Positions 10,484 to 62,102 of a stretch of DNA of 64,000 nucleotides are shown here, in pieces; positions within the stretch are counted from its first letter, which is position 1; every line of letters begins with the position of its first letter. The notes beneath the pieces were generated by a model. It worked only from the letters and a program-made list of their open reading frames with translations. It did not search any database and had not been told where the DNA came from. Position numbers and translations under genes: made by a program. The stretch is taken from IMG/VR virus record IMGVR_UViG_3300042305_001773, positions 1 to 64,000 of that record, one strand, 5' to 3'.

Positions 10484-12364
10484 TCACGGCTTCCACCCGC
10501 TTGTTGCGCCTGTTACACCGAATTGCTCGCCTTGGGCTAAAGCAGGCACATAACTGCTGCCCGCGGTATCGCTGCTTAAACCGCGCTGTACGCTGTTCAT
10601 AAGCCCCTTTTCTTGATACGAACCCAGCATGCGGGTCATCCAATCCGGGTCGTTTGAGATGTTTGCCATGCCGCGCACCATTTCGGGCTGGAACGGCGGC
10701 GGTTCTTTGTGGGCCTGAATTGTTTTTACGCCGTATTTGTTTAAGTTTGTCAGCACGTTTTTACCGATCTTTGTGCCAATTGAATAGTGCAGTACCGGCT
10801 TTTCGAGGTAATGCCCTGTTAAAGTGCTGGGCGCGGCCGATACACTTCCTTCGCGCGGCGTCCAATTACGCTCAATAGTCGAATACGGCACCACGTCATC
10901 TGGTACGTAATCACCGTACTCGTCGGTAAGGCGTACGTGATTTACAAGACCGCGCGCTAACAGCTCGATGTTGCGGCGATGGGCCGTAATACCGCTGTTA
11001 CCCATGACTTGCCGCATGGCCTGCACGAAGTAACGACGGCCTTCGCCTACGCCCTTGTGCCTGACAATTTCTGCCGGATTTGGCATACCCTCTGATATAA
11101 CGTCACCAGCTTCAAGCTCATCGCCCTTTTTGACCGAAAGATTTCTCTCTGTCGGAACATAGTGGTCCTGACCGTTAATCTGCACATAGTGGCCGCCCTG
11201 CGGAGCCGGACGAACTTCCTGTACCCGGCCGTCGAGCTGCGCGTGCACGGCGCCGTCTGGATATTTTTTCGGGACCTGTACAAGCGCGTTGAGCGCTTTA
11301 AAACCAGAAATCGCTCCTGCGCCGCCGACACCGCCAGAATGCTTCGAGCTGATCTGGCTTTGCGTGACTGGTTCCGACAGCGCTTGTGCTGCCGCGATAC
11401 CCACATAATCTCCAATAGGCGGTAAACGCCCTTTTTCCCTGTAACCGACGTCTTTCGCATAAACTCCACCGTCTCCCGGACCGCCGACAATCGGGCTGCG
11501 GACTAAGATATCTTTGGCGCCGCTTTCTTTCAGATCCCGCAGAATCTTTGGCGTCAGCATCGTATTGCGCTTGTACGGCCCGACGGCTCGCGCAAGAAAC
11601 GCGCCTTCGTTATCGGGATCGTCTACGTCGGTCGGGTAGCCGCGCTCTTCTGCCGCCATACGCCGTTCTTCGTCCGTGTCGTCATCATCGTCAGCTGTCA
11701 CAAGCAGGCGGTGCGTCATCTGCGCCAGTTGTTTACCGTAGAAACCGGCGTCAGCTGTAGCCGTCTTGAGGTCGATAACGCCTTTGCGTGTACCGAACGC
11801 GCCGGCGAAATACTCCACCGGGCGCAAACCTTGACTGTAGCCGCGCAGCACCGGAATTGGAATCGGGTCGCCGCGGTGGTCGAGATACTGCATGTCGGCG
11901 CCGAGGATTGAATTCAGCTGAAACTTATTACCGACACCCGACCCGGCAATCTGATGCGCTAAAGGGTTATCTTGGCCCTCAGCTTCCTTGTATACCTTGT
12001 CGAGCAGTTCTTGTTGCGCCGTCTGCGCCAATTCAAGCAGTTTGATATTGCGCTGTTTTTCGTCAAGCCGTTTGTCAGCAAAGATGTCGCGCATCTGACT
12101 CTGTACGCGCAGCTGAACATGCCGCGCGGCCAAAGTCGGCCGAATATCTTTTAACCCAAAAGACAGGCCGTTCGTTGTATATCCGGCGTCACGACCGATA
12201 TCGTGAAGTCGTTTCATAACTTCGCGATATTTTTCTGGGTGATTCTTCGCCAGATCGGTGGCGACGTTTGACATAGTTTTTTTGGTCAATACGCGATCGT
12301 AATCGCGCATCTCTGGCGGCAACGCTTCGTTAATCAGAAGTTGTCCGAGCGTTGTCTTCAGCAT
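10484..12364 (-). CDS. rpoC: RNA polymerase beta' C-terminal subunit
   Basis: Bridge helix (GTRKGVIDLKTATADAGFYGKQL), trigger loop (GIAAAQALSEPVTQSQISSKHSGG), HRRNIELL. Confidence 0.92.
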   Translation of the reverse strand: MLKTTLGQLLINEALPPEMRDYDRVLTKKTMSNVATDLAKNHPEKYREVMKRLHDIGRDAGYTTNGLSFGLKDIRPTLAARHVQLRVQSQMRDIFADKRLDEKQRNIKLLELAQTAQQELLDKVYKEAEGQDNPLAHQIAGSGVGNKFQLNSILGADMQYLDHRGDPIPIPVLRGYSQGLRPVEYFAGAFGTRKGVIDLKTATADAGFYGKQLAQMTHRLLVTADDDDDTDEERRMAAEERGYPTDVDDPDNEGAFLARAVGPYKRNTMLTPKILRDLKESGAKDILVRSPIVGGPGDGGVYAKDVGYREKGRLPPIGDYVGIAAAQALSEPVTQSQISSKHSGGVGGAGAISGFKALNALVQVPKKYPDGAVHAQLDGRVQEVRPAPQGGHYVQINGQDHYVPTERNLSVKKGDELEAGDVISEGMPNPAEIVRHKGVGEGRRYFVQAMRQVMGNSGITAHRRNIELLARGLVNHVRLTDEYGDYVPDDVVPYSTIERNWTPREGSVSAAPSTLTGHYLEKPVLHYSIGTKIGKNVLTNLNKYGVKTIQAHKEPPPFQPEMVRGMANISNDPDWMTRMLGSYQEKGLMNSVQRGLSSDTAGSSYVPALAQGEQFGVTGATSGWKP

Positions 12365-13343: not shown

Positions 13344-16300
13344 TTACGTATTATCTTCCACAATATGCACCGGGGTGTCCACCTCTATTTCGCCGCGTCG
13401 GTATGCCTGTACGGCATCCTGCTTGCTACGAAACACGCGGGGTTTGGCTTTTTTACTGATCCGACTGGACGCCAAGTATAACCCAGTCTGGTAGTCTTTG
13501 TTCGGAACGTAGTGCGCGCGAAAGGTAGACGCAGCAAACAAATTTTTGCTCGGCAGCATCTTTTCAACGGCTTCTTTCGCGGCGTCTTCTGTACTTGGGA
13601 CGTGATACTGCATCGCGTCTCCGTCGAAGTCGGCGCCAAACCCCTTGGTGATCACGGGGTTTACTTCCATAACTTTGTTCTTCGTCAGCTTAGGGTAAAA
13701 CGCCATCATGCCGTAACGGTGTAAAACAGGCGCGCGATTAATAACAATCGGTCGCGACGACATCTGACGGTCAAGCTCGGCGAACGCTTCTTTATTCTTA
13801 TCTTCAACCGCCTGCATCGCCTGCATGCGCGGGAGGCCCCGACGGACGAGGCCGCGGACGACAAACGGTTTGTAAATGTCCCACGCTTTCTCTTCCGGTA
13901 GCGCAACCTCGTCCATATCCAGATCGGGGTTTGGTGTGATGACAGCGCGGCCGACGAGATCTACCGTCGAGCTAAGCAGTTTGCGCTGAACGGTGCCGTA
14001 CTTTGGCGAGTTACCGAACACGTGCCGCAGGAAACCTTTGACATTACGCTCGACGTTCTTGGGCTGCTGCGGCTCGCCTAACCCGGTAACAGCCTTCATT
14101 GAGTCGTACACACTTAGCCGCTCGTCGCCGTAATCAGTTAGCGCGCCAGATGCTTCTTTCAGCGTGTCGTTGGCGTCGAGCAGTTCTTTGTACAAATAGT
14201 TAGCATCAGCTACGAGCGGGAGCTTTTTACTTCCCATTGTGCTCACGGGACGGAAGAGCGGCGGCAAGACTGGTACTTTACTGATCATCCAGTCTTTAGG
14301 GTGCACGCCGGTTGTTTCAGCACTCTTCAAAAAACCCAGCCGGCGCACGGCAGCGTCGCGTAGCGTCTTGCGCCCGGACTTGATATCTAAACGAGCCTGC
14401 TCAATTGCCTTCGGTAAGTTAATTCTTTCGAGCGCGGCTTTGATCGCTGTCGGGCCGGTTTTATCGCCCAGCTGCTCTCGGCCGGCCAGCACACCGCGGA
14501 ACTGCTTCTCGGTCAGGCCAAGCACACGGCGAATCGGGTCTTCCATGACGGGGTTAGGCAGCGGCTCGTGCAACGTGATCTTGCTCCACCGATTACCGCC
14601 GTGACCGCCTGTTAATGTCTCGTCAAACAGCCCGCCTGCAATAGGCTTGAGCCGCCCTTTCCAGTCCACGGTCTCGGAACTCTTTAGCTCGCGCGCGCCT
14701 GCCAGCTCGTCGACGTCTTTGTCGGTCATCGCCATCAAGTTTGAGCGCGTACCCTTGCGCACAACGTTGATACCCGACGCCTTGAGTTGGGTGACAAACT
14801 TCTCGTAAACGTGCGGTACTTTAGGCAGCGGCGGCGTATATCCGGCCATGAACTGCGACCAGTATTCGGGGTTAGCTTGGCCGCGCACCATCTTGGCATC
14901 GCGAATAACCTTGCCGGCACCGTGTGACAGTAACGCGCCCAGATCCAACATGCCGATGCGCTTGGCGCCTTCGCTGCCACCTTTTGCTGGTGTACCTTCG
15001 GCGGTATACGCGCCCATCGACCGGCCTTGCGCCTTTGACTCGCTGGTGTGGTGCAACTTCATGAAGAACCGGTTGCCAGTGAGGACGCCGCCGATTTTAC
15101 GTCCAGTTTCTGGATCGATAACGTCTTCGGTATCTGACAGGCCGTGCGCTGCTAATTCTTTCTGCGCAAACTCAATCAGGTCGCGTTTGTTATCAAAGTC
15201 CTTGAGCTTGTACGGTTTGCCAGTCTTTGCCGCAACTTTACCCAGCGCAGCCTCGATAACTTGCGTCGGGTTAATGCGGCTGATCAGACCCAGCGGCGAG
15301 ACAAGAACTTCAAACGGGTTACCATCGCGATCCTTGGGCATCTGGTCGTCAGGTACGATCTCGGCAACGACGCCCTTATCACCGAAGCGCCCCGTGAGCT
15401 TATCGCCGACGTCCATGGGTGCTTGGTTCTTCACTACAACGCTCACACCCTTCTTGGTGTGCATAACGTCGGTCACGATACCGGGGGCATGATGCTCCCA
15501 CGTGATTGTCTCGTTGGTGAAGTTACCGGCACGCCCACGATGCACTTTGCCGTACACCGTGTCTTTCTTCTTTGCCACAAGCACAAGTGGATCACCAAAC
15601 TTAACCTCAGTGCCCTTTTTGATGGCGCCGTCGTCGTCAAAGTTGTCGAGATACTTTTTGTCGTACTCAGTCGGGAACAAACTCACGAACGCCTTCTTGC
15701 CAACGTGAGTGTTGTCGTCCCACTCGGCTTCGTGCTGATACATGTGCTCAGACGTCAGCCGCTTGGATGCAGATTCAGAAATAACTACCGCGTCTTCGTA
15801 GTTCTTGCCGCGAAACGGCAGATACGCCGTACGTAGATTAAGCCCTAGCGCGGCGCTGCCGTTTTGGTCAGTAAAGTTTGACCGCGCCAGCAGCTGTCCG
15901 GGTTCGACTGTGTCACCCGGTTTCACAAGCGGCGTCTGGTGTAAAAACGTTTTACGGTTGTACGGCATTTCGTTGTACAGATCGATCGTCTTCTTGTTAC
16001 CATCTTTGTCGCGCAGCACGATACCGTCAGGTGTCACGTCCACTACTTGTGCCCGCTCAGTAGCCCGTGTGGCGCCCAGCTTCTCGCCCATCTCGTCTTC
16101 GTGCGACACGCTTTCGTCGTCAGCCTTGGCAGACTGCAACAGCGGCGCCTCGGCGTTTACGAGCGGAAGCGCCTGCGTAAACATTCGGCTACCCATGATC
16201 ACGCGATGACCTTTGATCATGGATTTAATCGGCACCATGTTTGTGAGCGCCGAAAACGTCGTGTCCATGTTGGGCAGACTGAACTGCGCTTCTTTTTTCG

Positions 16301-17747
16301 GCACGTATTTCAGCTTGCCGTTTACGAGCGCGGCTACAACAGGCAGGTTGTTATCTTCTTCGCCCGGAAATACTAGCGGTGTGTCGGCCAGCTCTTGTGG
16401 TGTCTTGTACACCTTCTCGCCGGTTTTCATATCTATAACCGGCGTATACACCTTGCCGTCGGAGCCCTTCATGGCGCCGCGAGCAAACCGCATGTCGACA
16501 CCCACTTTTCCAGACTCGGGCGTGCGAAGGTAGTCGATAAACCCAAGGTGGCTGGGCTGCACAGAACGCGACTCAGCGGGCACGGCGTCGAGCGAACCGA
16601 TGCCGCCCTCACCCATGCGCGTTACACGGGTCTGGTGGTCAAAGATCTCAGCCGGGTTGATTTCTTCAAGACTCGACCCCAAACCGCTGCCAATAAGCGC
16701 AGCTGAGATTGCCTTGTCGAATACACCCGACGGAATGTGATCAATTGACTTCTTCGCCGTGGCTTTCCAGAGTAGCTTGTTAAGAGACTGCCGGTCTTTG
16801 GTAAACCGCTCGGCAATGAGGTCTTCCGGGCCGACGACGGACTGATACACCATGTTGTCTCGGTCGTCGCTCTCGGCCTCGCGGCGATTCACTGCGATTA
16901 ATTTCTTAGTGATCGCCAGAATCGTCTCCGGCGTCATGTTCTTGTATTCAGAACCCAGTGTGCGCCGGGTGACTTCCGGGTCGAGTTCGGTCTTGGCAAA
17001 CTCGGCCGCGATCGCCTGCGCTTTGGCAATGGCGTCTGCGCCCGCGACTGGTTTATTTACAAGCCGGGCGTAAATTTTATCCAGCGTACCCGCATCGCCC
17101 TTCTCCATGTTGACCGCGGTGATCTCGTTGCCCCATGCTTTGCGAATGTCCTGATCCGACACGCCCATAGATTTGAGCAGCGGCATGAGCGGGATCTGCG
17201 CCTGCCCGATGCTGATCTTAAACACGCCAGTCTTGGGGTCGAGGAAGTACCGGTGCGAGCGACCCTTACCCGGAAGCGTGTTTACATGCGCCTCGATTTC
17301 GCCGTTGTCTTTTTCGCGGGTAAACACGCCGGGACGCAACCGCATTTGGTGCGCAAGGGTGTACTCCACACCGCCGTTCACAAACGTGCCAGAGTCGGTG
17401 AGGTACGGCACGTGAGCGATCGTGGCGCGGCGCTGGCCTACAGGCTGGCCGGTTTTGTTATCTGTAAGCGTCCACGTACCTTGCAATCGCCGGGCGAGTG
17501 TCCCTCTAGAAAGGACAGCTTTCTTTTGATCTGCCCTCGTGAAACGTTCAGGTCCTGTGTACCCGACGTCTTGAAGCTGCAGCGTATACAGGTCGTTCTG
17601 CAGCGGCTTGAGACTCTGCGCGCTGTTCAGCGCCTGATTGAAAATGTTATCGCGCATCATGCCAACATCGCCGAATGTGCGCATTGTGGGCGCAACGGGC
17701 GCGGGCATCATCGACGACTTTAGCTCGGGCAGCTCGGGGGCTGGCAT
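13344..17747 (-). CDS. rpoB: RNA polymerase beta fused to beta' N-terminal half
   Basis: beta motifs RTPESGKVG, NYEDAVVIS, GDKLTGRFGDKGVV, MKLHH; beta' motifs VPVLPPLFRP, NRAPVLHR and catalytic GADFDGDAM. Confidence 0.95.
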   Translation of the reverse strand: MPAPELPELKSSMMPAPVAPTMRTFGDVGMMRDNIFNQALNSAQSLKPLQNDLYTLQLQDVGYTGPERFTRADQKKAVLSRGTLARRLQGTWTLTDNKTGQPVGQRRATIAHVPYLTDSGTFVNGGVEYTLAHQMRLRPGVFTREKDNGEIEAHVNTLPGKGRSHRYFLDPKTGVFKISIGQAQIPLMPLLKSMGVSDQDIRKAWGNEITAVNMEKGDAGTLDKIYARLVNKPVAGADAIAKAQAIAAEFAKTELDPEVTRRTLGSEYKNMTPETILAITKKLIAVNRREAESDDRDNMVYQSVVGPEDLIAERFTKDRQSLNKLLWKATAKKSIDHIPSGVFDKAISAALIGSGLGSSLEEINPAEIFDHQTRVTRMGEGGIGSLDAVPAESRSVQPSHLGFIDYLRTPESGKVGVDMRFARGAMKGSDGKVYTPVIDMKTGEKVYKTPQELADTPLVFPGEEDNNLPVVAALVNGKLKYVPKKEAQFSLPNMDTTFSALTNMVPIKSMIKGHRVIMGSRMFTQALPLVNAEAPLLQSAKADDESVSHEDEMGEKLGATRATERAQVVDVTPDGIVLRDKDGNKKTIDLYNEMPYNRKTFLHQTPLVKPGDTVEPGQLLARSNFTDQNGSAALGLNLRTAYLPFRGKNYEDAVVISESASKRLTSEHMYQHEAEWDDNTHVGKKAFVSLFPTEYDKKYLDNFDDDGAIKKGTEVKFGDPLVLVAKKKDTVYGKVHRGRAGNFTNETITWEHHAPGIVTDVMHTKKGVSVVVKNQAPMDVGDKLTGRFGDKGVVAEIVPDDQMPKDRDGNPFEVLVSPLGLISRINPTQVIEAALGKVAAKTGKPYKLKDFDNKRDLIEFAQKELAAHGLSDTEDVIDPETGRKIGGVLTGNRFFMKLHHTSESKAQGRSMGAYTAEGTPAKGGSEGAKRIGMLDLGALLSHGAGKVIRDAKMVRGQANPEYWSQFMAGYTPPLPKVPHVYEKFVTQLKASGINVVRKGTRSNLMAMTDKDVDELAGARELKSSETVDWKGRLKPIAGGLFDETLTGGHGGNRWSKITLHEPLPNPVMEDPIRRVLGLTEKQFRGVLAGREQLGDKTGPTAIKAALERINLPKAIEQARLDIKSGRKTLRDAAVRRLGFLKSAETTGVHPKDWMISKVPVLPPLFRPVSTMGSKKLPLVADANYLYKELLDANDTLKEASGALTDYGDERLSVYDSMKAVTGLGEPQQPKNVERNVKGFLRHVFGNSPKYGTVQRKLLSSTVDLVGRAVITPNPDLDMDEVALPEEKAWDIYKPFVVRGLVRRGLPRMQAMQAVEDKNKEAFAELDRQMSSRPIVINRAPVLHRYGMMAFYPKLTKNKVMEVNPVITKGFGADFDGDAMQYHVPSTEDAAKEAVEKMLPSKNLFAASTFRAHYVPNKDYQTGLYLASSRISKKAKPRVFRSKQDAVQAYRRGEIEVDTPVHIVEDNT

Positions 17748-25224: not shown

Positions 25225-25494
25225 TCAGCTTAAACCCATTAAAAACCGCACAAACACAAAAATCCACGCAAGCAAGCCGCTAATAGCAAAAAAAACCACA
25301 ACCGCGCTCAGGCTGACAACACGCCCGAGCTGCTGAATCGGAATTTCGCGCAACAACCGCCACGCTTTGAGGTAATCAATCGCGCCCGGTTGTTTAGGTG
25401 GCTCCGGCGTAGGTTCGGGGTTCGGTTCCGGCGTTACCGGATCTTTTTTACGCCCAAGGAGGTCACGTAATTTATCAAACAGCGCGTTAGCCAT
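25225..25494 (-). CDS. Membrane protein
   Basis: PE-rich linker, C-terminal TM segment. Confidence 0.5.
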   Translation of the reverse strand: MANALFDKLRDLLGRKKDPVTPEPNPEPTPEPPKQPGAIDYLKAWRLLREIPIQQLGRVVSLSAVVVFFAISGLLAWIFVFVRFLMGLS

Positions 25495-27325
25495 TCTTTT
25501 TACTCCAGCTTTGAATGGTGTCAAAGACGTCGTTGCCGTACAGCTGCGTCGCTTTGTCCAGCATGTTCATCTGCGGCAGTGTTCCAGTCGCGGCAGCCTG
25601 CGCCATTTGATATCTGTACTGCGGATCGAGCATCGAGCGATACAGGTGCGACTTCTGACGCGCGGCCAGAATGAAATCGCCGCGCTGCTTGGCCTTAAGC
25701 AGGTGATCGGTCACGTTTGCAAAGACCGGTTTGTTGTGGTCGTAGACAAACGGCGTCCGCAAATCGAGCAGGTTGCGGAACTGCTGCGCATATACGCTGC
25801 CTGTTGCTGCTTTCACGTGCGAACCTACGACTCCGGCCGGCGCATGAAACCGAAACTTCGTCGGTGTGTGCGTGATACCCTTGTATTTCGGCTTTGGATC
25901 GTCCACGTGCCAGTCTTGCGGTGATTGCGCAATTAATCGCCGCAAGATCTCGTGCTTTCGGTCATATTCGCGGCGATCAGAGTGCGTTTTCGCCGCACGT
26001 AACTCGTCCAGCGTGTTTGGTTTCTTTGTGCTGGGCTCTTCTTCTGCGCCCTTCTCTATTTCTTTGACTTTTTCGTAGTACAGGGGGTCTTCTTGCAGAT
26101 GATCCTTGGCAATTTCTTTGGCGACTTGATCGTTTCTTGTGTGCTCGTGCTCATGTTTAGCTCCTTCGGCTAAAGCTGGGGCAGAAAAATCCCGATCGGG
26201 TAAATTATCGGCTTCACCGCCCGGTAACAGGTCTTTTTGTCCCGAGCGGGAAAGTTCGGTGGCGGCTGTCTTAGCGACCACGGGCGCAAGCAGCTTTTTG
26301 ATGTCGGGGCCGATGTAGTCGTCGCCTTCGGGCAGGCCGGGCGCCAACGTGATGTAAGGATCGGAGCCGACTGTCGCTTTAAACACTCCCGGCTTGAGTT
26401 TGTGTTTTGCCAGCTCTAAGTAATGCTCATGCGTTTTTGACGGGTCGTTGCCCAGTGCGCGAAACGCGGTCGGTTTTACTTTGACGCCAAGTTCTTCGAA
26501 CAACTCGCGCGCCGCGGCTTGCTCCGGCGTCTCTCCTGTTTCCACGCCACCGCCGATAAAACGCCGTTTTCCGAGATTGTCGGGCCATTTTGGATTAGTA
26601 AGCGTTTCAAGCAAGTACTTATTTTCGTACGGTAACACAACGCGCACGCGAGGTTGTGGTGCGTCGGCAGCGGCTTTTAGCTCCCCCCTACTGATGGGGT
26701 TACTAAACCTATGCTCTTCCGTCGTTTCGGCAGGGGTTTCGTAACCCTTGGACTTACCGTTGTCGAGCAACACGCCTTTGCGGCGGGCGGCGACGGTAAT
26801 GTGGAACGGATGGTCGTCGTTGGGAAGTGCGGATAGGCCGTAACTCTTGCGCAGCGCCGAAAGCGCCGGACTGCTGACTTGCACGGCCCAGACTTTGCTT
26901 ACGCCATCTACGTTTTTGACGTCGATTTCTTTCAGGCCGCCCAGCGTGTAGCCGAACATGTGGCCGCGCTCATTGATCTTGTCAGCACCGATAGATGCTA
27001 CCTCATCCGCCGTCATCACCGATATATGCGCATTTACGAGATCGCCCTTAACGTTTGGAACGTTAAACACGCCCGCTGTCGGTAATTCAGCGCCGGGCTC
27101 GGTCAGGGCGTCGAACACACCGCGGACGAGCGCGTTCGGTACAGATAACAAAAGCCAGCCAGATTTGGCGAGATAGAGACGGCCGGCGAGCGGATAACTC
27201 GTGGCGGCCTGCTTGTTGCCGCTGCGATAGAGCCAGCCGAGCGCGTTACCGGCAATATAGGCAGGATGCTCGCGAAAGTAATGCGGTTCCCAAGCGAGCG
27301 GGTCGAGTGCTGAGAGGCTATCCAT
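25487..27325 (-). CDS. Multidomain protein: 2H phosphoesterase + Nudix hydrolase + DUF5661-like + unknown domains
   Basis: HISV/HITV pair; Nudix box GGVETGETPEQAAARELFEELG; EHEH...EIAKDHLQEDPLYY; domains separated by KQA, KAA, KTA, KGA, KAA. Confidence 0.8.
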   Translation of the reverse strand: MDSLSALDPLAWEPHYFREHPAYIAGNALGWLYRSGNKQAATSYPLAGRLYLAKSGWLLLSVPNALVRGVFDALTEPGAELPTAGVFNVPNVKGDLVNAHISVMTADEVASIGADKINERGHMFGYTLGGLKEIDVKNVDGVSKVWAVQVSSPALSALRKSYGLSALPNDDHPFHITVAARRKGVLLDNGKSKGYETPAETTEEHRFSNPISRGELKAAADAPQPRVRVVLPYENKYLLETLTNPKWPDNLGKRRFIGGGVETGETPEQAAARELFEELGVKVKPTAFRALGNDPSKTHEHYLELAKHKLKPGVFKATVGSDPYITLAPGLPEGDDYIGPDIKKLLAPVVAKTAATELSRSGQKDLLPGGEADNLPDRDFSAPALAEGAKHEHEHTRNDQVAKEIAKDHLQEDPLYYEKVKEIEKGAEEEPSTKKPNTLDELRAAKTHSDRREYDRKHEILRRLIAQSPQDWHVDDPKPKYKGITHTPTKFRFHAPAGVVGSHVKAATGSVYAQQFRNLLDLRTPFVYDHNKPVFANVTDHLLKAKQRGDFILAARQKSHLYRSMLDPQYRYQMAQAAATGTLPQMNMLDKATQLYGNDVFDTIQSWSKKNG

Positions 27326-27339
27326 AGCGCGCTTTCAAA

Positions 27340-27411
27340 CTGCCTGAGTAGGACTCGAACCTACAACCCCAGCATTAACAGTGCCGTGCACTACCATTGT
27401 GCTATCAGGCA
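27340..27411 (-). tRNA. tRNA-Asn(GUU)
   Basis: Cloverleaf; TGCCTGA/TCAGGCA acceptor; CTGTTAA anticodon loop; GTTCGAG T-loop; CCA not encoded. Confidence 0.92.
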
Positions 27412-27548
27412 ATGCGTGTCACGGGGTCGCGCTAATACTTGGTGTCGTCATACCCCTGACAGCGTGATGTGAAACTGCCGCGTAGGCCGACACTAGCAGC
27501 AAGAGGCAAAACACAGCGGAAGCGCCCCAAGCGGCTACGCTCAATTGT

Positions 27549-46802: not shown

Positions 46803-46855
46803 CGCTGATAGCTAAAAAAACGCTTAGCAGCCGGGAGTGGTTAGCTCCCGGCTGC
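46802..46855 (-). terminator. Hairpin plus T-tract fused to boundary motif
   Basis: GCAGCCGGGAG/CTCCCGGCTGC stem, then TTTTTTTAGCTATCAGC on the minus strand. Confidence 0.7.
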
Positions 46856-50416: not shown

Positions 50417-50746
50417 ATGAAAGTTCTAAGAATTATGTTATTTAGCCTGCTGTGCGTGCTGAATACGGGACTAGCCTGCGCCGATACCGTGTTAATGTTC
50501 TCCGCAGAATGGTGCAAATACTGCCAGATCGCCAAAAGGGATCTCTTGGAGAACAAAGACGAGGTGGCAGAGTGGAATGTTGAGGTGGTCGATGCTGATG
50601 CGAGCCGAGAAATGGTGCAGCAGTATGGCGTGAAAACGCTCCCGACGTTTATCTATCTAAATGACGCCGGGGAAGAAGTCGACCGGGTGGCTGGCTATAA
50701 GGGCTACAACCGGCTGAAGCGCTGGGTCGAGCGAAATAAGCGCTGA
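50417..50746 (+). CDS. Secreted thioredoxin-family protein
   Basis: Signal peptide, WCKYC, LPTF; AAGGAGG RBS; only convincing plus-strand gene. Confidence 0.9.
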   Translation: MKVLRIMLFSLLCVLNTGLACADTVLMFSAEWCKYCQIAKRDLLENKDEVAEWNVEVVDADASREMVQQYGVKTLPTFIYLNDAGEEVDRVAGYKGYNRLKRWVERNKR

Positions 50747-50844
50747 TATCTAAAGAAAGCGCTCGCAGCCCCGGGGCTTAGGCGGCACCCGGGGCTGCAA
50801 TACGCTTCCGCGCAGCAGTTAAGTTATTAACTACTGCGCACACA

Positions 50845-53859: not shown

Positions 53860-53919
53860 CTGCCGCTGATAGCTAAAAAAAGCGCCCGCAAGCGGCGGTC
53901 AAACCTGCGGGCGCTCTGC

Positions 53920-54208: not shown

Positions 54209-54241
54209 ACTTAATATGACCGGAAATAGCATGTTATTTAG
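54209..54241 (-). promoter_or_regulatory. Phage promoter P4
   Basis: CTAAATAAC-N14-CATATTAAGT. Confidence 0.65.
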
Positions 54242-54329
54242 TGCGCATCCAGATGATGATATCTAAACCCGTATCTTCTTCTTCGTCGTCGTATTCGGTG
54301 GTCAGGATGTTGGGGCCGGCGTAATTCAT
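54234..54329 (-). CDS. Small acidic ORF, 31 aa
   Basis: MNYAGPNILTTEYDDEEEDTGLDIIIWMRTK; AGGAGG RBS. Confidence 0.4.
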   Translation of the reverse strand: MNYAGPNILTTEYDDEEEDTGLDIIIWMRTK

Positions 54330-54435
54330 CTGTACCTCCTGACGACATAAACGCAGAACGTGGCGCAATTATACGATTTTGATAACACGTCCCCTATTCT
54401 GTAAGAAAAAGCGATCAAATTTCTTACAACTAATT

Positions 54436-54520
54436 GACGTAACATATTGATACATAAGGACTTAGAGTATCTAAGCTTTTCTTGGTTGTTCTAAGTCCTT
54501 ATTTGACAGGTAGTTACGTC
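54436..54520. repeat. Pair of inverted 31-bp sites in an AT-rich gap
   Basis: GACGTAAC-N10-ATAAGGACTTAGA at 54436-54466 and its reverse complement at 54490-54520. Confidence 0.75.
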
Positions 54521-54764
54521 TAATAGCTAAAAAAAGGAGCGGCTGGCTTGTGCCGTGCGCGCTCCTGAGAACCGCTCATTACTGAACGGCTCTTGTTTGG
54601 AGGGCGCATGGCCCACCTCCTTTCTGCTGAAAGGTAAAAAACCTCGCCGGGAATTGCACCCGGCCTGCCACAAGCTTTTAAGGCTCGCTGTCGCGCACCG
54701 AACGTGGGCGACTGGCAGTGTCTCTAGTGAGATTCAGCCGCGTGGCCACGCAGCTTGACTAGCT

Positions 54765-54992
54765 CTAGACGGACTCGAACTCGGCGTCGATGACAGTGCA
54801 GTGCTCGAACTCGTCATCGTTGAGAATCGCGCGCTCGGCCGGAATGCACTCGCACACTCCGATCTCGCGGTGGCAGTGACAGCAGCGCTCTGTGTCGGTG
54901 TCGGGCACCGGCATTGCAAGCGCCACCATCCAATCCCGGTAGTCGTCCACGTTGACTTTGACCTTCGGGTTATTGCGCAACTGAGCCATCAT
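54765..54992 (-). CDS. Small Cys-containing hypothetical protein
   Basis: AAGGAGG RBS; CCHC..CEC. Confidence 0.6.
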   Translation of the reverse strand: MMAQLRNNPKVKVNVDDYRDWMVALAMPVPDTDTERCCHCHREIGVCECIPAERAILNDDEFEHCTVIDAEFESV

Positions 54993-55161
54993 CTCGTCCT
55001 CCTTGAGGAGATAAAACGCCACCGTTCTCGTTGGTGGCCTACGCTTGCAGGTCGTCTGCAAGACCGCCCTGTTAGACCCGAACAGGAGACAGGTAGGGAT
55101 TGCTTAGCGAGTACGTAAAGCACGTGGCTATACCACGGCCGCGGCACCGCTATAGGTCCCT

Positions 55162-55194
55162 ACTAGATATGCCCGCTTTTTTGGGTTTATTTAG
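55162..55194 (-). promoter_or_regulatory. Phage promoter P5
   Basis: CTAAATAAA-N14-CATATCTAGT. Confidence 0.75.
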
Positions 55195-55306
55195 CTGGGC
55201 CGGGATAGCTAAAAAAAAGCCGGCAGGGGAGCGCACCCCTGCCGACTCTTGGCGAATTAACGAGTCGCCACCCGTGCCGAAGCGACCAACCGGTCGCCAA
55301 AAGAAT

Positions 55307-55657
55307 CGTTAGCACATGTCATGCCTGTAAGGACAGGTATCACTACCCGCCTACGGTCTGCAGCCGTTTGTTAGGTCACAGACAAACAGGTGGTGTACGG
55401 CCACTTGTTTTTGTTATTTAAAACTAGTCTGGCAGGTCTTTCACCTGCACCGCTCGCTCCCCTAGCCATAATGTTAGCGTAGTCGAACGGAGTCGCTTGT
55501 AGTAGCCACGAGGCCCGGGCGGGGCTGCCCGCTACTACGTAATCTACCCTAACGGTTCCTGCAAAACATTTCACCGCGCCTGCTCGTTACAAACGCGTAC
55601 GTGCACCTAGAGATAGGTTCATACACACGCTTCTTACAGGCATGACATGTGCCAACG
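55307..55657 (-). ncRNA. Large structured ncRNA candidate, about 350 nt
   Basis: 27-bp terminal inverted repeat with 2 mismatches; internal stems GTAGTAGC/GCTACTAC and GCAGGT-GAAAG-ACCTGC. Confidence 0.6.
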
Positions 55658-55681
55658 TCTGGATTCTAGCATCCATGTTGG

Positions 55682-55966
55682 CTACGTCAACGTGTCAATA
55701 TAGTGCTGTAGGGCACAGGCATGACGCGTGACGATATCCTCGGCTTCGCTTCCGGGGCACTTCTGATCCAGCTCTTGGACCAGACTGACAACTGAACGCC
55801 GAATGTTTAACAACGCCCGGCGCAGTTGTTTCACTTCCACCTCGGTGTCAGTTTTGTATCTATTCCCTTCCTTCGTCGTCACCATCGGTTCTAGCGCCTC
55901 CTTCTTGTGTACAACCTCGTCCCACCACTGATTGTTCCACTTCACTGCTGCCGGTCTCGCTGGCAT
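55682..55966 (-). CDS. Hypothetical protein
   Basis: ORF track; AAGGA RBS. Confidence 0.55.
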   Translation of the reverse strand: MPARPAAVKWNNQWWDEVVHKKEALEPMVTTKEGNRYKTDTEVEVKQLRRALLNIRRSVVSLVQELDQKCPGSEAEDIVTRHACALQHYIDTLT

Positions 55967-56135
55967 TGGTTTCCTTTTTTAACTCTTCAAACGTTAGCTC
56001 TGTGACACGATCGACAAGATCGTTCGCAAGCCCGTCAACCCTGCGGCGAAGATAGTTGATCTTTGATTCCATCTCCGCTAGCTCGTCTCTGGTTTTAATC
56101 AGACTTCTGACCAAGTCAAGCATGTAGCTGCTCAT
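55860..56135 (-). CDS. Coiled-coil hypothetical protein
   Basis: ATGA coupling; AAGGAG RBS. Confidence 0.55.
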   Translation of the reverse strand: MSSYMLDLVRSLIKTRDELAEMESKINYLRRRVDGLANDLVDRVTELTFEELKKETNASETGSSEVEQSVVGRGCTQEGGARTDGDDEGRE

Positions 56136-56428
56136 GTCGGCTCCTTCAGGTCGTCGAGCGTTGTCTTCAAACCAAAACCACGATCGGTCAGATATCGCCC
56201 GACCAGATCGCCGACATCCATGACGCTCAGGTTTTCATACACCCGCTGCGACTCCGTCGGGCTGTATGCGCCAAAGCACGTCACCTTCAGCATGATGGGT
56301 GATCCATTGTCAGTCACTTCGATATCCTCGATGTGCCCCAGCTGGTCGCCCACCATGCCGTCTTCCAGCGCGTGATTGCAGGCGTCACGCAGCGCCTCCA
56401 CGAACCAACGAACTGTGTGCTTGCTCAC
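56132..56428 (-). CDS. Hypothetical protein
   Basis: GTGA-coupled start VSKHTVRWF. Confidence 0.55.
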   Translation of the reverse strand: MSKHTVRWFVEALRDACNHALEDGMVGDQLGHIEDIEVTDNGSPIMLKVTCFGAYSPTESQRVYENLSVMDVGDLVGRYLTDRGFGLKTTLDDLKEPT

Positions 56429-56712
56429 AGCGCCGCCTCTTTGGGTTTGGGATTCGCCTCGTTCTCCAGCTGCTGCCGGATCTGGTACATCCGGTCGATC
56501 AGCAACTCGGCCACGCCGCCGTGAGTTGAACACATTTGCAGGAAGTCCATCACCTCGGGCATGAGCGCCGTGAACGCCAGCACCGCCTCGTTGACCGTGG
56601 CGTGGTTGTGGAACTCCAGCAAGGTATTGCCGGTCTTGGGGTCTTCCACCCAGCCGCGTAGATGGGCCGGCGTGGCCTGACTTCCGAGCGGTTTGAGCCG
56701 AATATTGAGCAT
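56425..56712 (-). CDS. Hypothetical protein
   Basis: ORF track; operonic. Confidence 0.6.
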   Translation of the reverse strand: MLNIRLKPLGSQATPAHLRGWVEDPKTGNTLLEFHNHATVNEAVLAFTALMPEVMDFLQMCSTHGGVAELLIDRMYQIRQQLENEANPKPKEAAL

Positions 56713-56730
56713 AATTATTCCTCTTTAAAA

Positions 56731-57390
56731 TCACCCGATCGGTCCAATTGCCTGCTGCACGCGAGCAGGCAACACGACGTACTTCAGCATATTGATAGCT
56801 TTGTAGTCGTAACCTTCGACCTTCGGTTCTTCGTAGTTCAGCAGCCACAAAAACGGCTGATGAAACCAGTTGGCCAGAAAATGCCCGTGCTCGCGCAACT
56901 GCTTGAGATGCGTGAGTAGTCCTTCCCGGCCGTCGTAATATCCGGCCCACACCATCGTGCCGTCGGCCATCTCTTCGTATTCGCCAGATGACGTGTACTG
57001 ATACGCGCCATCCAGACTGGTCGGCACCCAGTTGTAATACACCTGAATTTTGTTAACAACAAATCTGTGGTTCATCTCAAACGATTCAGACGTTAACAAT
57101 AAGCCGGCTGGGTGCCACCAAATTTCGAACACATCTTCCGCGTAGTTGTGCGTCTCGTGGTATACCTTGTCAAACCCGTTGCGCTCAAACAGCTGCTGCG
57201 CGCCGGCGTAGCTCATGCTGAAGTGCGTGTCGCCCAACACAGAAAGCGCGTCTTCTTTTTCCTGCGCCAGCTGCTGCATCATGACAATGCCCAGCTTCGT
57301 GGCGTCATCACCGGGGCCGACGATCTTTTCTGCCTCGTCAAGCGTATCGCGCTTCAGCAGCTCCAGCGCATGTGTTTCCAATGCGTTCAA
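56731..57390 (-). CDS. Hypothetical protein
   Basis: 219 aa; AAGGAG RBS. Confidence 0.65.
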   Translation of the reverse strand: MNALETHALELLKRDTLDEAEKIVGPGDDATKLGIVMMQQLAQEKEDALSVLGDTHFSMSYAGAQQLFERNGFDKVYHETHNYAEDVFEIWWHPAGLLLTSESFEMNHRFVVNKIQVYYNWVPTSLDGAYQYTSSGEYEEMADGTMVWAGYYDGREGLLTHLKQLREHGHFLANWFHQPFLWLLNYEEPKVEGYDYKAINMLKYVVLPARVQQAIGPIG

Positions 57391-57393
57391 TTT

Positions 57394-57612
57394 CTACTCC
57401 TTTGTGAAAAGAAACGTATCGTTCACCAATTCAATCTTTGACGGCATGTTTGTATTGTTAACAAGCCGTACACTTGGGTCGTCCACCATCTGACCGTTGA
57501 TCTTGCACCGACCCGTCACAATCTCGCGCCGAATCAACGACTCCGGCATGTCTGTCTTTGTCGCCAGCCAGTCCACGAGCGACACCCCGACAATCGGCTC
57601 TGCTTCGCTCAT
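57394..57612 (-). CDS. S4-like RNA-binding small protein
   Basis: IRREIVTGRCKINGQMVDDP resembles an S4 motif. Confidence 0.5.
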   Translation of the reverse strand: MSEAEPIVGVSLVDWLATKTDMPESLIRREIVTGRCKINGQMVDDPSVRLVNNTNMPSKIELVNDTFLFTKE

Positions 57613-59265: not shown

Positions 59266-59466
59266 AAACAACGTTGTGCTCAGGTATGCTAGCTGGCACG
59301 GGATATCGGTCTTGGGGCTCGGGCATACCATACCACCCTAGTTTCCTAATCCGCTACGTTGTGTGTTCTAAATGCCGATGCTGGGCACTACTCCAGCAGT
59401 TTTAATCGCGTGCTCGGCATTCACACACACGACGATAAAGGGCAACGCTAGCTAGTCGTGCCCTCA

Positions 59467-59807
59467 TGGAGGCGGCGGGAATCGAACCCGCGTCCAGAAT
59501 GGTTTCCACGTAAACGTCTACATCGTTAGCGCGTTGTTCTCACACTACGCGCAAAGCCAGCCGATTATCGGCGTCAGGTGGGCTACCACCATCTTTGGCT
59601 GTCTCTCCAGCCTGTCCGCCGTCTTCCCGGCTTCCAGCGTGATGGGCGATAACGTCACGCGCGTTACCCGGTCACTGCTCAGGCAGCGAGAGCGGGGACA
59701 CTGTTGAAAGTGCCAATTAACATGTAATCGATTTTTATGCTGGCCCTTCGATCAACCAGCCGATGCAATCTACGCTTCTCTCCATCTGTCGATACCAGTA
59801 CGCCCCC
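59467..59807 (-). ncRNA. ssrA: tmRNA; tag (A)GTFNSVPALAA*
   Basis: GGGGGCG/CGCCTCCA acceptor with G3-U70; GGACGCGGGTTCGATTCCCGC T-arm; tag ORF ending ALAA-TGA. Confidence 0.93.
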
Positions 59808-60031
59808 TTAAGTTGTTGGCTGTATTCCCATTGTGAGCTTACGGCGGGTAGACCCGCCTTCATTTACCGCTGGCTCTTTTGTACGTAATTTATCCAGCAG
59901 CACCAACAACTAAATCGAAAAAGCCTCGCCGCAGGGCTGTGGTCATATCGAGTATGTTGTACCCTCCCACAATTTAAGGTAGTTAACTTTCCCCTGCATT
60001 TCGCAGCGCTGTACACACGCTGCCGAGACAA

Positions 60032-60105
60032 TAACCCGGGTGGGAGTCGAACCCACAACAAGTAGATCCTAAGTCTACCGCCTCTGCCAGTTGGGCTACC
60101 GAGTT
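60032..60105 (-). tRNA. tRNA-Leu(UAG), short variable loop
   Basis: Cloverleaf; GTAGA-CTTAGGA-TCTAC. Confidence 0.88.
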
Positions 60106-60109
60106 ATAT

Positions 60110-60182
60110 TGACCCCACGGGGATTCGAACCCCGGTAAACGGAACGAAAATCCGTTGTCCTAGGCCACTAGACGATGGGGCC
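60110..60182 (-). tRNA. tRNA-Glu(UUC)
   Basis: Cloverleaf; ACGGA-TTTTCGT-TCCGT. Confidence 0.9.
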
Positions 60183-60190
60183 GCGTGCGC

Positions 60191-60331
60191 CTAAGTATTG
60201 TCCGCGCACTCTTTCTTTTCAAGCAGCCGCTCTGTTTTCCAGAACAGACGCTTTCCGAACTTCTTCATGTGCTTGTTCCAGCCCATAATTTTTGGGCGCA
60301 CATGCAGCAGTCCGCGCTTTTTTGTGGTCAT
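60191..60331 (-). CDS. Small basic protein, 46 aa
   Basis: MTTKKRGLLHVRPKIMGWNKHMKKFGKRLFWKTER...; AAGGA RBS. Confidence 0.5.
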   Translation of the reverse strand: MTTKKRGLLHVRPKIMGWNKHMKKFGKRLFWKTERLLEKKECADNT

Positions 60332-60357
60332 GCTGTTCCTTTGATAACAAAACCCAG

Positions 60358-60428
60358 TAGCCCGCCGAGGAGTCGAACCCCGCGTTGCGAGTTAATAAGA
60401 CTCGCTTGCCAACCGGTTTCCGCGGGCC
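60358..60428 (-). tRNA. Atypical tRNA-like RNA, anticodon UAU (Ile?)
   Basis: Good acceptor stem and T-arm; 6-bp anticodon stem; U37; degenerate D-arm. Confidence 0.55.
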
Positions 60429-60491
60429 GCGTGGGTGGGGCGCCAGAGGCTTGGGCTACCTCCAGCGCCCCACCGTCAGCGAGTCTAACGC

Positions 60492-60854
60492 TTACCGGTA
60501 GCGCTTGCACGCATACCAGCGGCCATCCCTGCCACGCGCGACCCCTTGGTCAACGACCGCTCTGCCGCTATTGCTGTAGCAGCAGTTTCCCAGCGCCTGC
60601 TCGGGTGTTGAGCCCATGCCGACGCCCTCCATTCCAGAGTTTCCCCCGTAATGTCCCATGCGGCCATTGCTGGCCTGCAGCTCGGCTACGCCCTGCGCCG
60701 AACCGGTGTGCCCGGCATAAGACGTAGCGTACGAGTAGGACTTTGCAGGAGCCTGAACCTGAGACGGTGTGTAGGAACGACGGTGTCGCGGGGCAGCATG
60801 CGCAACGCTGACCAGCGAAAGAACGACGGCTACACACATGAGAAAACGGAACAT
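60492..60854 (-). CDS. Secreted protein with minimal CAP/SCP-like domain
   Basis: Signal peptide; MGH...EGVG...CCY...WYACKRY. Confidence 0.6.
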   Translation of the reverse strand: MFRFLMCVAVVLSLVSVAHAAPRHRRSYTPSQVQAPAKSYSYATSYAGHTGSAQGVAELQASNGRMGHYGGNSGMEGVGMGSTPEQALGNCCYSNSGRAVVDQGVARGRDGRWYACKRYR

Positions 60855-60921
60855 AACGATCCTCCGTGACCCCGCTGCGGGTGTGCGCAGCGTGAAAAGA
60901 AACAGGCCCCACACCGGGCAG

Positions 60922-60995
60922 TAGGCGCAAAGGGACTCGAACCCCTAACCCCCTGCGTGTAAAGCAGGTGCTCTGACCAATTGAGCTATGCGCCT
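60922..60995 (-). tRNA. tRNA-Val(UAC)
   Basis: Cloverleaf; CCTGC-TTTACAC-GCAGG. Confidence 0.92.
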
Positions 60996-61001
60996 ACAGG
61001 T

Positions 61002-61388
61002 CTAGCTGTACTTGCCACGCCATTTGTCAAAGCGCAGCATGTACCAGTTCCACCGGTCACGAACGCGCCGACCCTGTCGTCGGAGGCCACGGCAAAACCG
61101 CAGCCACGGCGTGTTCAAGCCGTTTTCGGTGAGGTACTTTCGGTACGACCATTGAACAGCCTCGTCTGATCCGGCATCAGTTATCGCCAGATCACACGCG
61201 TCGCAACGCAGGCACGGCACAGCATACACCGGTACCTGATGTATCTTACCGTCAATGCGCATGTCGTACACGTCTTTGAACGTATACGCTCTCATGGTCT
61301 CGCCGCACTGGTAACAGCAAACCGGCCTGTATACACAGGTGGACTGCTTTAACAAGTTGGGCGACAGAATGTTTTGATCCACTGACAA
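61002..61388 (-). CDS. MqsA/YgiT-type Zn-ribbon protein
   Basis: CYQCG...VPCLRCDAC. Confidence 0.55.
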   Translation of the reverse strand: MSVDQNILSPNLLKQSTCVYRPVCCYQCGETMRAYTFKDVYDMRIDGKIHQVPVYAVPCLRCDACDLAITDAGSDEAVQWSYRKYLTENGLNTPWLRFCRGLRRQGRRVRDRWNWYMLRFDKWRGKYS

Positions 61389-61404
61389 CTCCTTTCTATC
61401 AGAT

Positions 61405-61477
61405 TAGGATCGGTGGGACTCGAACCCACACTGGGAGGATTTTAAGTCCTCTGCCTCTGCCATTGGGCTACGATCCC
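61405..61477 (-). tRNA. tRNA-Leu(UAA), short variable loop
   Basis: Cloverleaf; GAGGA-CTTAAAA-TCCTC. Confidence 0.9.
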
Positions 61478-61487
61478 CCGCCGCTGT

Positions 61488-61775
61488 TCACACCAGCGTG
61501 GTTTCTTCGGGCGCCGGGTACTGCTCAGGATGAGCGATGTGCCGGAACAACGCACGCCCAGTGTCGCTGTGCGTGCCGAACATATCCCGGCGGTGCATCG
61601 TCTGCTCAACCATCTCGAACGCCTGCCGCAGGTGCAGGTATTGCGAGTAGGTTAACGGCATCCCGTTATCCAGCAGCGGCTCCAGCGCGTCGCGCAGTTT
61701 GCGCAGCTCGACGGGCAGGCGGTCGTTGTAATAGCTCGCCGTTCGTTCAAATTCATCGCGTTCGTGTGTCACCAT
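61488..61775 (-). CDS. Hypothetical protein
   Basis: ORF track. Confidence 0.5.
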   Translation of the reverse strand: MVTHERDEFERTASYYNDRLPVELRKLRDALEPLLDNGMPLTYSQYLHLRQAFEMVEQTMHRRDMFGTHSDTGRALFRHIAHPEQYPAPEETTLV

Positions 61776-61986
61776 TCCAGACGTACCTCTTGTCGCCAAT
61801 CTGGCACCACCACCGCTGCCCGTCGTTCCAGTAGACGGGAGTCACAGACGGCGATGGGGGTTGCAGCGTTGTCGGCGCGGGATGCGCCTTCTGATACTCT
61901 TCATAGCTCTGCCACGCGATTCCCGCAAGCATCAGCAACGCCGTCACCAAACCAATCACATTGCCCTTGATTTCAATACCCTTCAT
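61753..61986 (-). CDS. Small membrane protein
   Basis: AAGGAGG RBS; TM segment. Confidence 0.6.
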   Translation of the reverse strand: MKGIEIKGNVIGLVTALLMLAGIAWQSYEEYQKAHPAPTTLQPPSPSVTPVYWNDGQRWWCQIGDKRYVWNGDTRTR

Positions 61987-62031
61987 TTCAAAACCTCCTT
62001 GTTTGGAAATGACCTTCAAACAACAAAACAT

Positions 62032-62102
62032 TGGGACCGCTGGGAATCGAACCCAGACCGAGGGATTAAAAGTCCCCTGCTCGACCTTCGAGCTACGGTC
62101 CC
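62032..62102 (-). tRNA. tRNA-Lys(UUU)
   Basis: Cloverleaf; GGGGA-CTTTTAA-TCCCT. Confidence 0.9.

Follow-up and report, generated by a model that had tools for sequence, protein, structure and literature searches.

A new structured non-coding RNA, abundant in lake metatranscriptomes, from an uncultivated freshwater jumbo phage

A 25-bp inverted repeat in the genome of an uncultivated 205-kb freshwater phage closes a roughly 350-nucleotide, intricately folded non-coding RNA gene. The RNA matches no known RNA family and is far more abundant than its one covered neighbouring gene in the best-covered lake metatranscriptome, while its function is inferred only. The window analysed here, a stretch of 64,000 nucleotides, is the first 64 kb of a 205,044-bp IMG/VR virus record rated complete (IMGVR_UViG_3300042305_001773). 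Nearly every gene in this genome is on the minus strand and the element sits in a 620-bp gap between two small minus-strand ORFs. The phage itself is novel. It encodes multisubunit RNA polymerase proteins (a beta/beta'-N fusion-like protein and a beta'-C-like protein), and its nearest isolates, Salmonella phage Arash and Vibrio phages D181, D148 and D69, are only about 32% identical in that protein. Its host has not been identified.

The first-pass annotation had described an RNA of about 350 nt closed by a 27-bp stem, with no convincing ORF, several internal stems including a T-loop-like hairpin, and a terminator and boundary motif nearby. This observation is confirmed, with small corrections. 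The arms are 25 nt each, 96% complementary and separated by 301 nt, and the helix (P1) is 25 bp rather than 27, because 55332-55333 and 55631-55632 do not pair. The single DNA-level mismatch is a G-U pair on the minus strand and is kept in all 11 aligned homologue sequences (pair 12/362). A 19-nt piece of the arm, allowing up to three mismatches, is expected 0.01 times by chance in the window and occurs only as the two arms. A 16-nt near-copy of the P1 5' arm (14 of 16) lies inside the upstream ORF but is present in none of nine relatives. It is probably fortuitous and was rejected as an alternative pairing partner. The GGUGAAAGACC hairpin, with a GAAAG loop, is real (it is the hairpin that had been called T-loop-like), as are the terminator and the boundary motif. 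However, the element had been placed on the plus strand, whereas the RNA strand is the minus strand.

Flanking proteins and conserved motifs retrieved the same locus from related contigs of about 200 kb from IMG/VR and JGI. Exact-motif scans gave 8 true and 4 chance loci among viral contigs, 4 true and 1 chance among JGI metagenomes, and a single 5-kb contig with phage synteny among 185,579 species genomes. This contig (RGVZ01000266.1, 5161 bp), binned as "MAG: bacterium isolate WB9_2_064", carries the RNA and the same phage gene order. It is most likely a phage contig mis-binned into a bacterial MAG, although it could be a clue to the host. The resulting alignment includes 11 sequences, 10 of them distinct, which are 80–93% identical to the window across the RNA. 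BLASTN of the locus against 50,697 GenBank phage records gave no match. A covariance model of the inner domain (R1) found no relatives in 76 loci of more distant phages that share the neighbouring phrog_11543 protein, nor in five whole distant phage genomes. The family is therefore confined to this phage clade.

Covariation among homologues had been proposed at the outset as a test of the RNA, and it is present. RNAalifold predicts 145–147 consensus pairs, of which 99.0% of all cells are canonical. Thirty-one pairs carry compensatory double substitutions, against 2–8 when the 3' partners are slid by 1–3 columns. For the 217-nt inner domain, 99% of cells are paired and 12 pairs are changed on both sides, against 1–3 in slid controls, and none of 500 shuffles reaches the observed percentage paired, double changes or covariation score. 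P1 has nine pairs with double changes. Its outer 10 bp are sequence-invariant apart from the first pair, which is U-A instead of C-G in one homologue, L018, while the inner 15 bp carry eight of these pairs. Hairpin A has one compensatory pair, hairpin B several, the second tail hairpin three and the terminator one. Statistical power is nevertheless limited, since the family is narrow (all sequences at least 80% identical) and much of the P1 covariation lies on a single branch separating two haplotype groups. P2, P3 and two short helices never vary, so that for these the support is thermodynamic only. Read 5' to 3' on the minus strand, the predicted fold has two tiers. P1 is followed by a junction carrying hairpins A, B and G. 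P2, an internal loop and P3 then lead to a second, multi-way junction carrying hairpins C, D, E and F. Hairpin G is stacked next to P1. Two loop complementarities could represent tertiary or intermolecular contacts, RRCGAG of hairpin B with CUCGUU of the second tail hairpin and CCGUACA of hairpin F with the GUAUG bulge of hairpin A, but neither has covariation to support it. The coordinates of these and other features are collected in the table.

Features of the RNA gene and of the surrounding genome (positions are those of the window unless stated).
Feature	Position	Strand	Description
Sigma-70-like promoter	55663-55690	-	-35 TTGACG (55690-55685), 16-nt spacer, TG-n-TAGAAT -10 (55668-55663); predicted start within about 2 nt of the first base of P1
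P1 5' arm	55633-55657	-	25 nt
Hairpin A	55599-55630	-	invariant 5' bulge GUAUGA; UCUC loop
Hairpin B	55575-55597	-	variable stem; conserved loop RRCGAGC
Inner domain	55353-55569	-	P2, invariant 5x6 internal loop (GAACC/AAACGG), P3 and multi-way junction with hairpins C to F
P2	55569-55559 with 55363-55353	-	
P3	55553-55548 with 55375-55370	-	
Hairpin C	55538-55499	-	
Hairpin D	55490-55450	-	
Hairpin E	55448-55432	-	the GGUGAAAGACC hairpin
Hairpin F	55431-55379	-	invariant CCGUACA loop
Hairpin G	55332-55351	-	invariant GUGA (GNRA-type) tetraloop
P1 3' arm	55307-55331	-	25 nt
Linker	55299-55306	-	U-rich, single-stranded (AUUCUUUU), immediately 3' of P1; candidate endonuclease site
3' tail	55251-55298	-	two conserved hairpins, 55298-55281 and 55269-55251 (loop CUCGUUAA)
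Intrinsic terminator	55208-55250	-	15-bp GC-rich hairpin plus T8 run, followed by AGCTAT
Upstream ORF	55682-55966	-	
Near-copy of P1 5' arm	55715-55730		16 nt, inside the upstream ORF
Downstream gene	54765-55061	-	76/98 codons
T6-7 + AGCTAT motif	46808-46819, 53869-53880, 54523-54534, 55205-55216; genome (G000) near 93299	-	directly follows five terminator hairpins
tmRNA followed by five tRNA genes	59464-59807 and 60031-62102	-	tag peptide GTFNSVPALAA; Leu-TAG, Glu, Val, Leu-TAA, Lys
RNA polymerase proteins	13344-17747 and 10484-12364	-	1467-aa beta/beta'-N fusion-like and 626-aa beta'-C-like
Three-domain protein	25487-27325	-	612 aa; NUDIX, 2H-phosphoesterase ("Swiss Army Knife") and DUF5661
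tRNA-Asn	27339-27412		beside the three-domain protein
Second gene-poor gap	54211-54764		z = -6.2
Intergenic gap	50557-50830	-	stable fold, z = -4.7
Intergenic gap outside the window	130470-130824 of the genome (G000)	-	stable fold, z = -9.0

Forty pairs (181 cells) are G-U on the minus strand and would become A-C mismatches on the plus strand, where the mirrored structure is only 86.9% canonical. The alignment folds at -213 kcal/mol on the minus strand and -150 on the plus strand, and the single-sequence folds agree (-158.8 kcal/mol, z = -7.95, and -141.7 kcal/mol, z = -5.55, respectively). No ORF is conserved: the 67-codon frame in the window is broken by frameshifts in relatives and one-nucleotide indels shift every candidate frame among the homologues. 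The RNA is a local peak of nucleotide identity (0.79–0.92 with full coverage, against 0.62–0.78 for most flanking windows), whereas the flanking proteins are 33–81% identical. It is retained in every relative, while the genes at 56250-57500 are absent from some. The phage tmRNA segment aligns poorly or not at all in three of the four relatives compared, whereas the structured RNA is always kept.

The gene appears to have its own transcription signals. The promoter-like site has 10 of 12 matches plus the TG and ends about 6 nt before the first base of P1. The -35 TTGAC, the -10 TAnAAT and their spacing are kept in the homologues (the -10 of L018 is TAAACT), even though the upstream protein of L018 is only 47% identical and its flank does not align. 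The strict pattern TTGAC-N16-19-TAnAAT occurs only here in the 205-kb genome. However, looser sigma-70-like sites are not enriched (6 on the minus strand and 2 on the plus strand, against 7.4 +/- 2.4 per strand in shuffles), and the -35 element overlaps the end of the upstream ORF. The start site is therefore inferred, not measured, and the RNA could instead be cut out of a phage-polymerase read-through transcript. The terminator lies on the same strand about 95 nt after P1. The T-run/AGCTAT motif which follows it recurs at four other terminators of the genome and looks like a transcription-unit boundary. In two cases it continues with CAGCTAAATAAAC, and it may be a combined terminator and phage-polymerase promoter cassette.

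Expression, whose absence had been set out beforehand as evidence against the RNA, was examined in metatranscriptomes. Twenty-four runs from 19 studies of freshwater, river, wastewater, aquaculture and sediment samples include 8–50% of the sampled 31-mers of the core. Eight of these were compared with the window and in every one the contigs are confined to the core, none crossing the U-rich linker. In the best-covered run (X15), contigs identical to the window and contigs from a second variant have word depths of 806–1950, against 8–12.6 for the two contigs on the adjacent gene (54774-55151) and zero over the tail and terminator (55170-55303) and the 860 nt upstream (55639-56500). Because the flanks are silent, the signal is RNA and not contaminating DNA. 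The high-coordinate boundary is sharp, at 55630-55635, the inner base of P1, in seven of the eight runs (the X15 contigs stop earlier, at 55574), while the low-coordinate boundary varies between 55318 and 55358. In another run, X25, an Illumina adapter abuts 55322, marking a fragment end. These are unstranded assembled contigs, so that the strand, the exact ends and removal of the tail are not directly shown, and the sharp boundary could equally be a reverse-transcriptase stop at the stable helix. The data show high abundance of the core and suggest, without proving it, that the tail is not attached to it.

An Rfam search had also been named in advance, since a hit to a known family would have removed the novelty. 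Rfam 15 (including RNase P, tmRNA, 6S, SRP, YrlA, group I/II introns, GOLLD, ROOL, OLE, HEARO, raiA and riboswitches) gave no match at the locus at gathering thresholds. At E up to 10 there were only scattered sub-threshold hits to the terminator and to one segment, none of which recurred in three homologues. Resemblances to the B12 box, RNase P CR-I/CR-V, the sarcin-ricin loop and the 11-nt GAAA receptor were considered by eye and dropped because the models do not match or the motif is not conserved. Literature searches found no description of this RNA. Neighbouring proteins, scanned against Pfam, PHROGs and the ESM Atlas, gave no informative function, and no complex was modelled since no partner is well enough motivated. 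Elsewhere in the genome, the three-domain protein beside tRNA-Asn may be an RNA-end-modifying or RNA-repair enzyme. The second gene-poor gap holds two terminators and two ORFs of about 31 codons with strong ribosome-binding sites and may contain micro-genes or further small RNAs, although its conservation among relatives is patchy. Of the two other intergenic gaps with unusually stable folds, the one outside the window is a candidate for another structured RNA, which R1 shows is not a paralogue of this one.

We interpret the locus, with reasonable confidence, as an independent gene for a stable, highly expressed, structured non-coding RNA belonging to a new family. That it is a real structured RNA gene is very likely, and that the RNA is stable and trans-acting rather than a leader is likely, whereas any one specific molecular role is at best possible. 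The analysis demonstrates the conserved fold, in which the first 25 nt pair with a segment about 325 nt downstream to form a rigid clamp around a compact two-tier multi-branch body, and the high abundance of the core; that this is a stand-alone minus-strand gene of a new family is at least strongly supported. How the RNA is started, processed and used is inference. In this view, host RNA polymerase would start from the sigma-70-like promoter at the first base of P1 and the transcript would run from about 55657 to about 55208. The roughly 95-nt tail would be cut off, either by a single-strand endonuclease at the U-rich linker or inside P1 by a host double-strand RNase, leaving a core of about 310–350 nt whose ends are protected by what remains of P1. 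The RNA would act in trans as a folded particle rather than by antisense pairing, either binding and sequestering or re-using a host protein or machine, or self-assembling as ROOL and GOLLD do. This is favoured because the conserved parts are junctions and loops of a compact fold, the RNA vastly out-accumulates its neighbours and the unit is bounded by a terminator. No partner protein, target or activity has been identified.

The interpretation offered by the first-pass annotation, which listed a large phage ncRNA, an RNase III-processed or circularised RNA, a retron-like decoy and a small non-autonomous element, is partly supported. The first is strongly supported. Processing at the stem is plausible: P1, 25 bp with one G-U, exceeds the perfect duplex of at least about 20 bp expected around an RNase III-matured RNA and is a classical RNase III substrate, and contigs beginning at about 55635 and one ending at 55322 are roughly compatible with a staggered cut about 8–10 bp from the inner end of P1. 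The contig ends at about 55630-55635 and 55318-55327, being unstranded and open to a reverse-transcriptase stop, do not settle whether mature ends carry a 2-nt 3' overhang. The phage has no RNase III gene. The stronger version, that the RNA is excised from a longer phage-polymerase transcript and the promoter-like site is fortuitous, is consistent with the phage polymerase and the lack of enrichment of host-type promoters. It is doubtful, since the conserved hexamers and spacing are positioned exactly at the 5' end of P1 in all homologues and the upstream flank has zero depth in every run. It concerns how the RNA is made, not what it is. Circularisation appears very unlikely. P1 juxtaposes the ends and the core is unusually stable and abundant, but no back-joined contig was seen in eight runs, a weak and undecided result given that contigs reveal circular junctions poorly, and the phage has no RtcB ligase. 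A search for a reverse transcriptase, which had been suggested as a check, found no RVT_1 (PF00078) match in the complete genome although control genomes matched, and no Rfam retron or group II model matches the RNA. The end-pairing of P1 does resemble the a1/a2 repeats of retrons but is not specific to them, and a retron-like template is contradicted as far as a phage-encoded enzyme is concerned. A MITE or a DNA-level element (origin, pac site or cruciform), suggested by terminal inverted repeats around about 300 bp of non-coding DNA, is also contradicted. The element is single-copy by BLAST and covariance model in the whole genome and by pattern search, its flanks (AGAAT and TCTGG) are not a target-site duplication, and it occupies the same syntenic site in every relative. 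Moreover, the compensatory changes and G-U pairs are meaningful only for RNA, and the element is massively represented in RNA libraries while its flanks are not.

Two further readings are unlikely. A cis-regulatory leader (giant riboswitch or attenuator) could control read-through into the downstream gene, which follows the terminator by about 150 nt, and the CUCGUU loop can pair with several upstream segments as an expression platform might. However, the core is about 100 times more abundant than this gene and no contig joins them, a 350-nt aptamer plus a 665-nt leader for a 76-codon gene would be unprecedented, and no riboswitch model matches. With a terminator and downstream gene present but a boundary motif shared with other terminators and no anti-terminator pairing conserved in both sequence groups, the attenuator criterion is neither fulfilled nor excluded. 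A ribozyme, self-processing or acting on RNAs such as the phage tRNA or tmRNA precursors, is suggested by the size, the invariant junctions and internal loop, the GNRA tetraloop, candidate long-range pairings, contig ends inside P1 and the tmRNA and tRNA island 3.8 kb away. Nevertheless, no RNase P, group I, group II or small-ribozyme model matches even at E = 10, there is no P4-like pseudoknot or exon context, and no cleavage junctions are visible. This reading overlaps with the favoured one rather than excluding it.

Going beyond the favoured interpretation, and more tentatively, the RNA could be the founding member of a new class of large phage RNA with an activity of its own, made in very large amounts early in infection, apparently by the host polymerase in a phage that otherwise brings its own, and acting as a new ribozyme, an RNA-only multimeric assembly or a high-affinity decoy that disables a host defence, translation or RNA-decay component.

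Large, intricately folded non-coding RNAs without a known function are rare and have historically turned out to be ribozymes, RNP cores or, recently, RNA-only nanocages. This one is compact enough for cryo-EM and chemical probing, has strong comparative support and is among the most abundant phage-derived RNAs in the lake metatranscriptomes examined. It therefore probably matters quantitatively during infection by a widespread group of uncultivated freshwater jumbo phages. It carries one of the few near-consensus host-type promoters in a genome encoding its own RNA polymerase, conserved in all relatives, which suggests a host-takeover or counter-defence role. For annotation, it shows that an "empty" intergenic gap in these phages is in fact a gene.

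Among known systems, the csRNA catalogue of IMG/VR intergenic regions (Fremin et al. 2023, PMC10690425) draws on the same data source and the same logic of covariation. It contains motifs of only 29–151 nt and so cannot describe this RNA as a whole; whether single hairpins are listed there was not examined. Retron msr-msd RNAs also enclose a structured RNA in a terminal inverted repeat, but this RNA is far larger and more branched and is a lytic-phage gene with its own terminator. Y RNA/YrlA-Ro60 and 6S RNA are abundant RNAs whose ends form a long helix and which act by binding a protein (Ro60/PNPase or RNA polymerase). The phage has no TROVE/Ro60 gene, although a host-encoded Ro60 cannot be excluded, and no YrlA or 6S model matches. 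The body is a two-tier multi-branch fold with seven hairpins rather than a rod of about 150–200 nt with a central bubble or a tRNA-like module, and it is two to three times larger. Stable RNAs matured from long end-pairing helices (precursors of 16S/23S rRNA, phage T7 early RNAs cut by RNase III) share the long duplex flanking the functional RNA, with RNA-seq boundaries here inside or at the base of that duplex. This RNA is, however, neither an rRNA nor an mRNA, cleavage is inferred only, and its 5' arm seems to begin at the transcription start rather than inside a longer precursor. Closest in kind are the "ornate" phage and prophage RNAs ROOL and GOLLD, of unknown function, often found near tRNA islands and shown to form RNA-only nanocages (PMC12286853). 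Like them, this RNA is phage-encoded, stand-alone, elaborately branched and without coding potential or an identified protein partner, lies near a tRNA island and has conserved loops that could form kissing contacts. The complementary RRCGAG and CUCGUU loops are only a lead in this respect, as multimerisation was not assayed. It differs from ROOL and GOLLD in showing no sequence or structure homology to them, in being confined to one narrow phage clade and in its much smaller size, about half or less (a 351-nt core against about 580 nt and more than 800 nt), with ends clamped by a 25-bp helix. It thus represents a new RNA family, with unusually good comparative and expression support, a narrow distribution and no demonstrated function, within a general kind that ROOL and GOLLD already exemplify.
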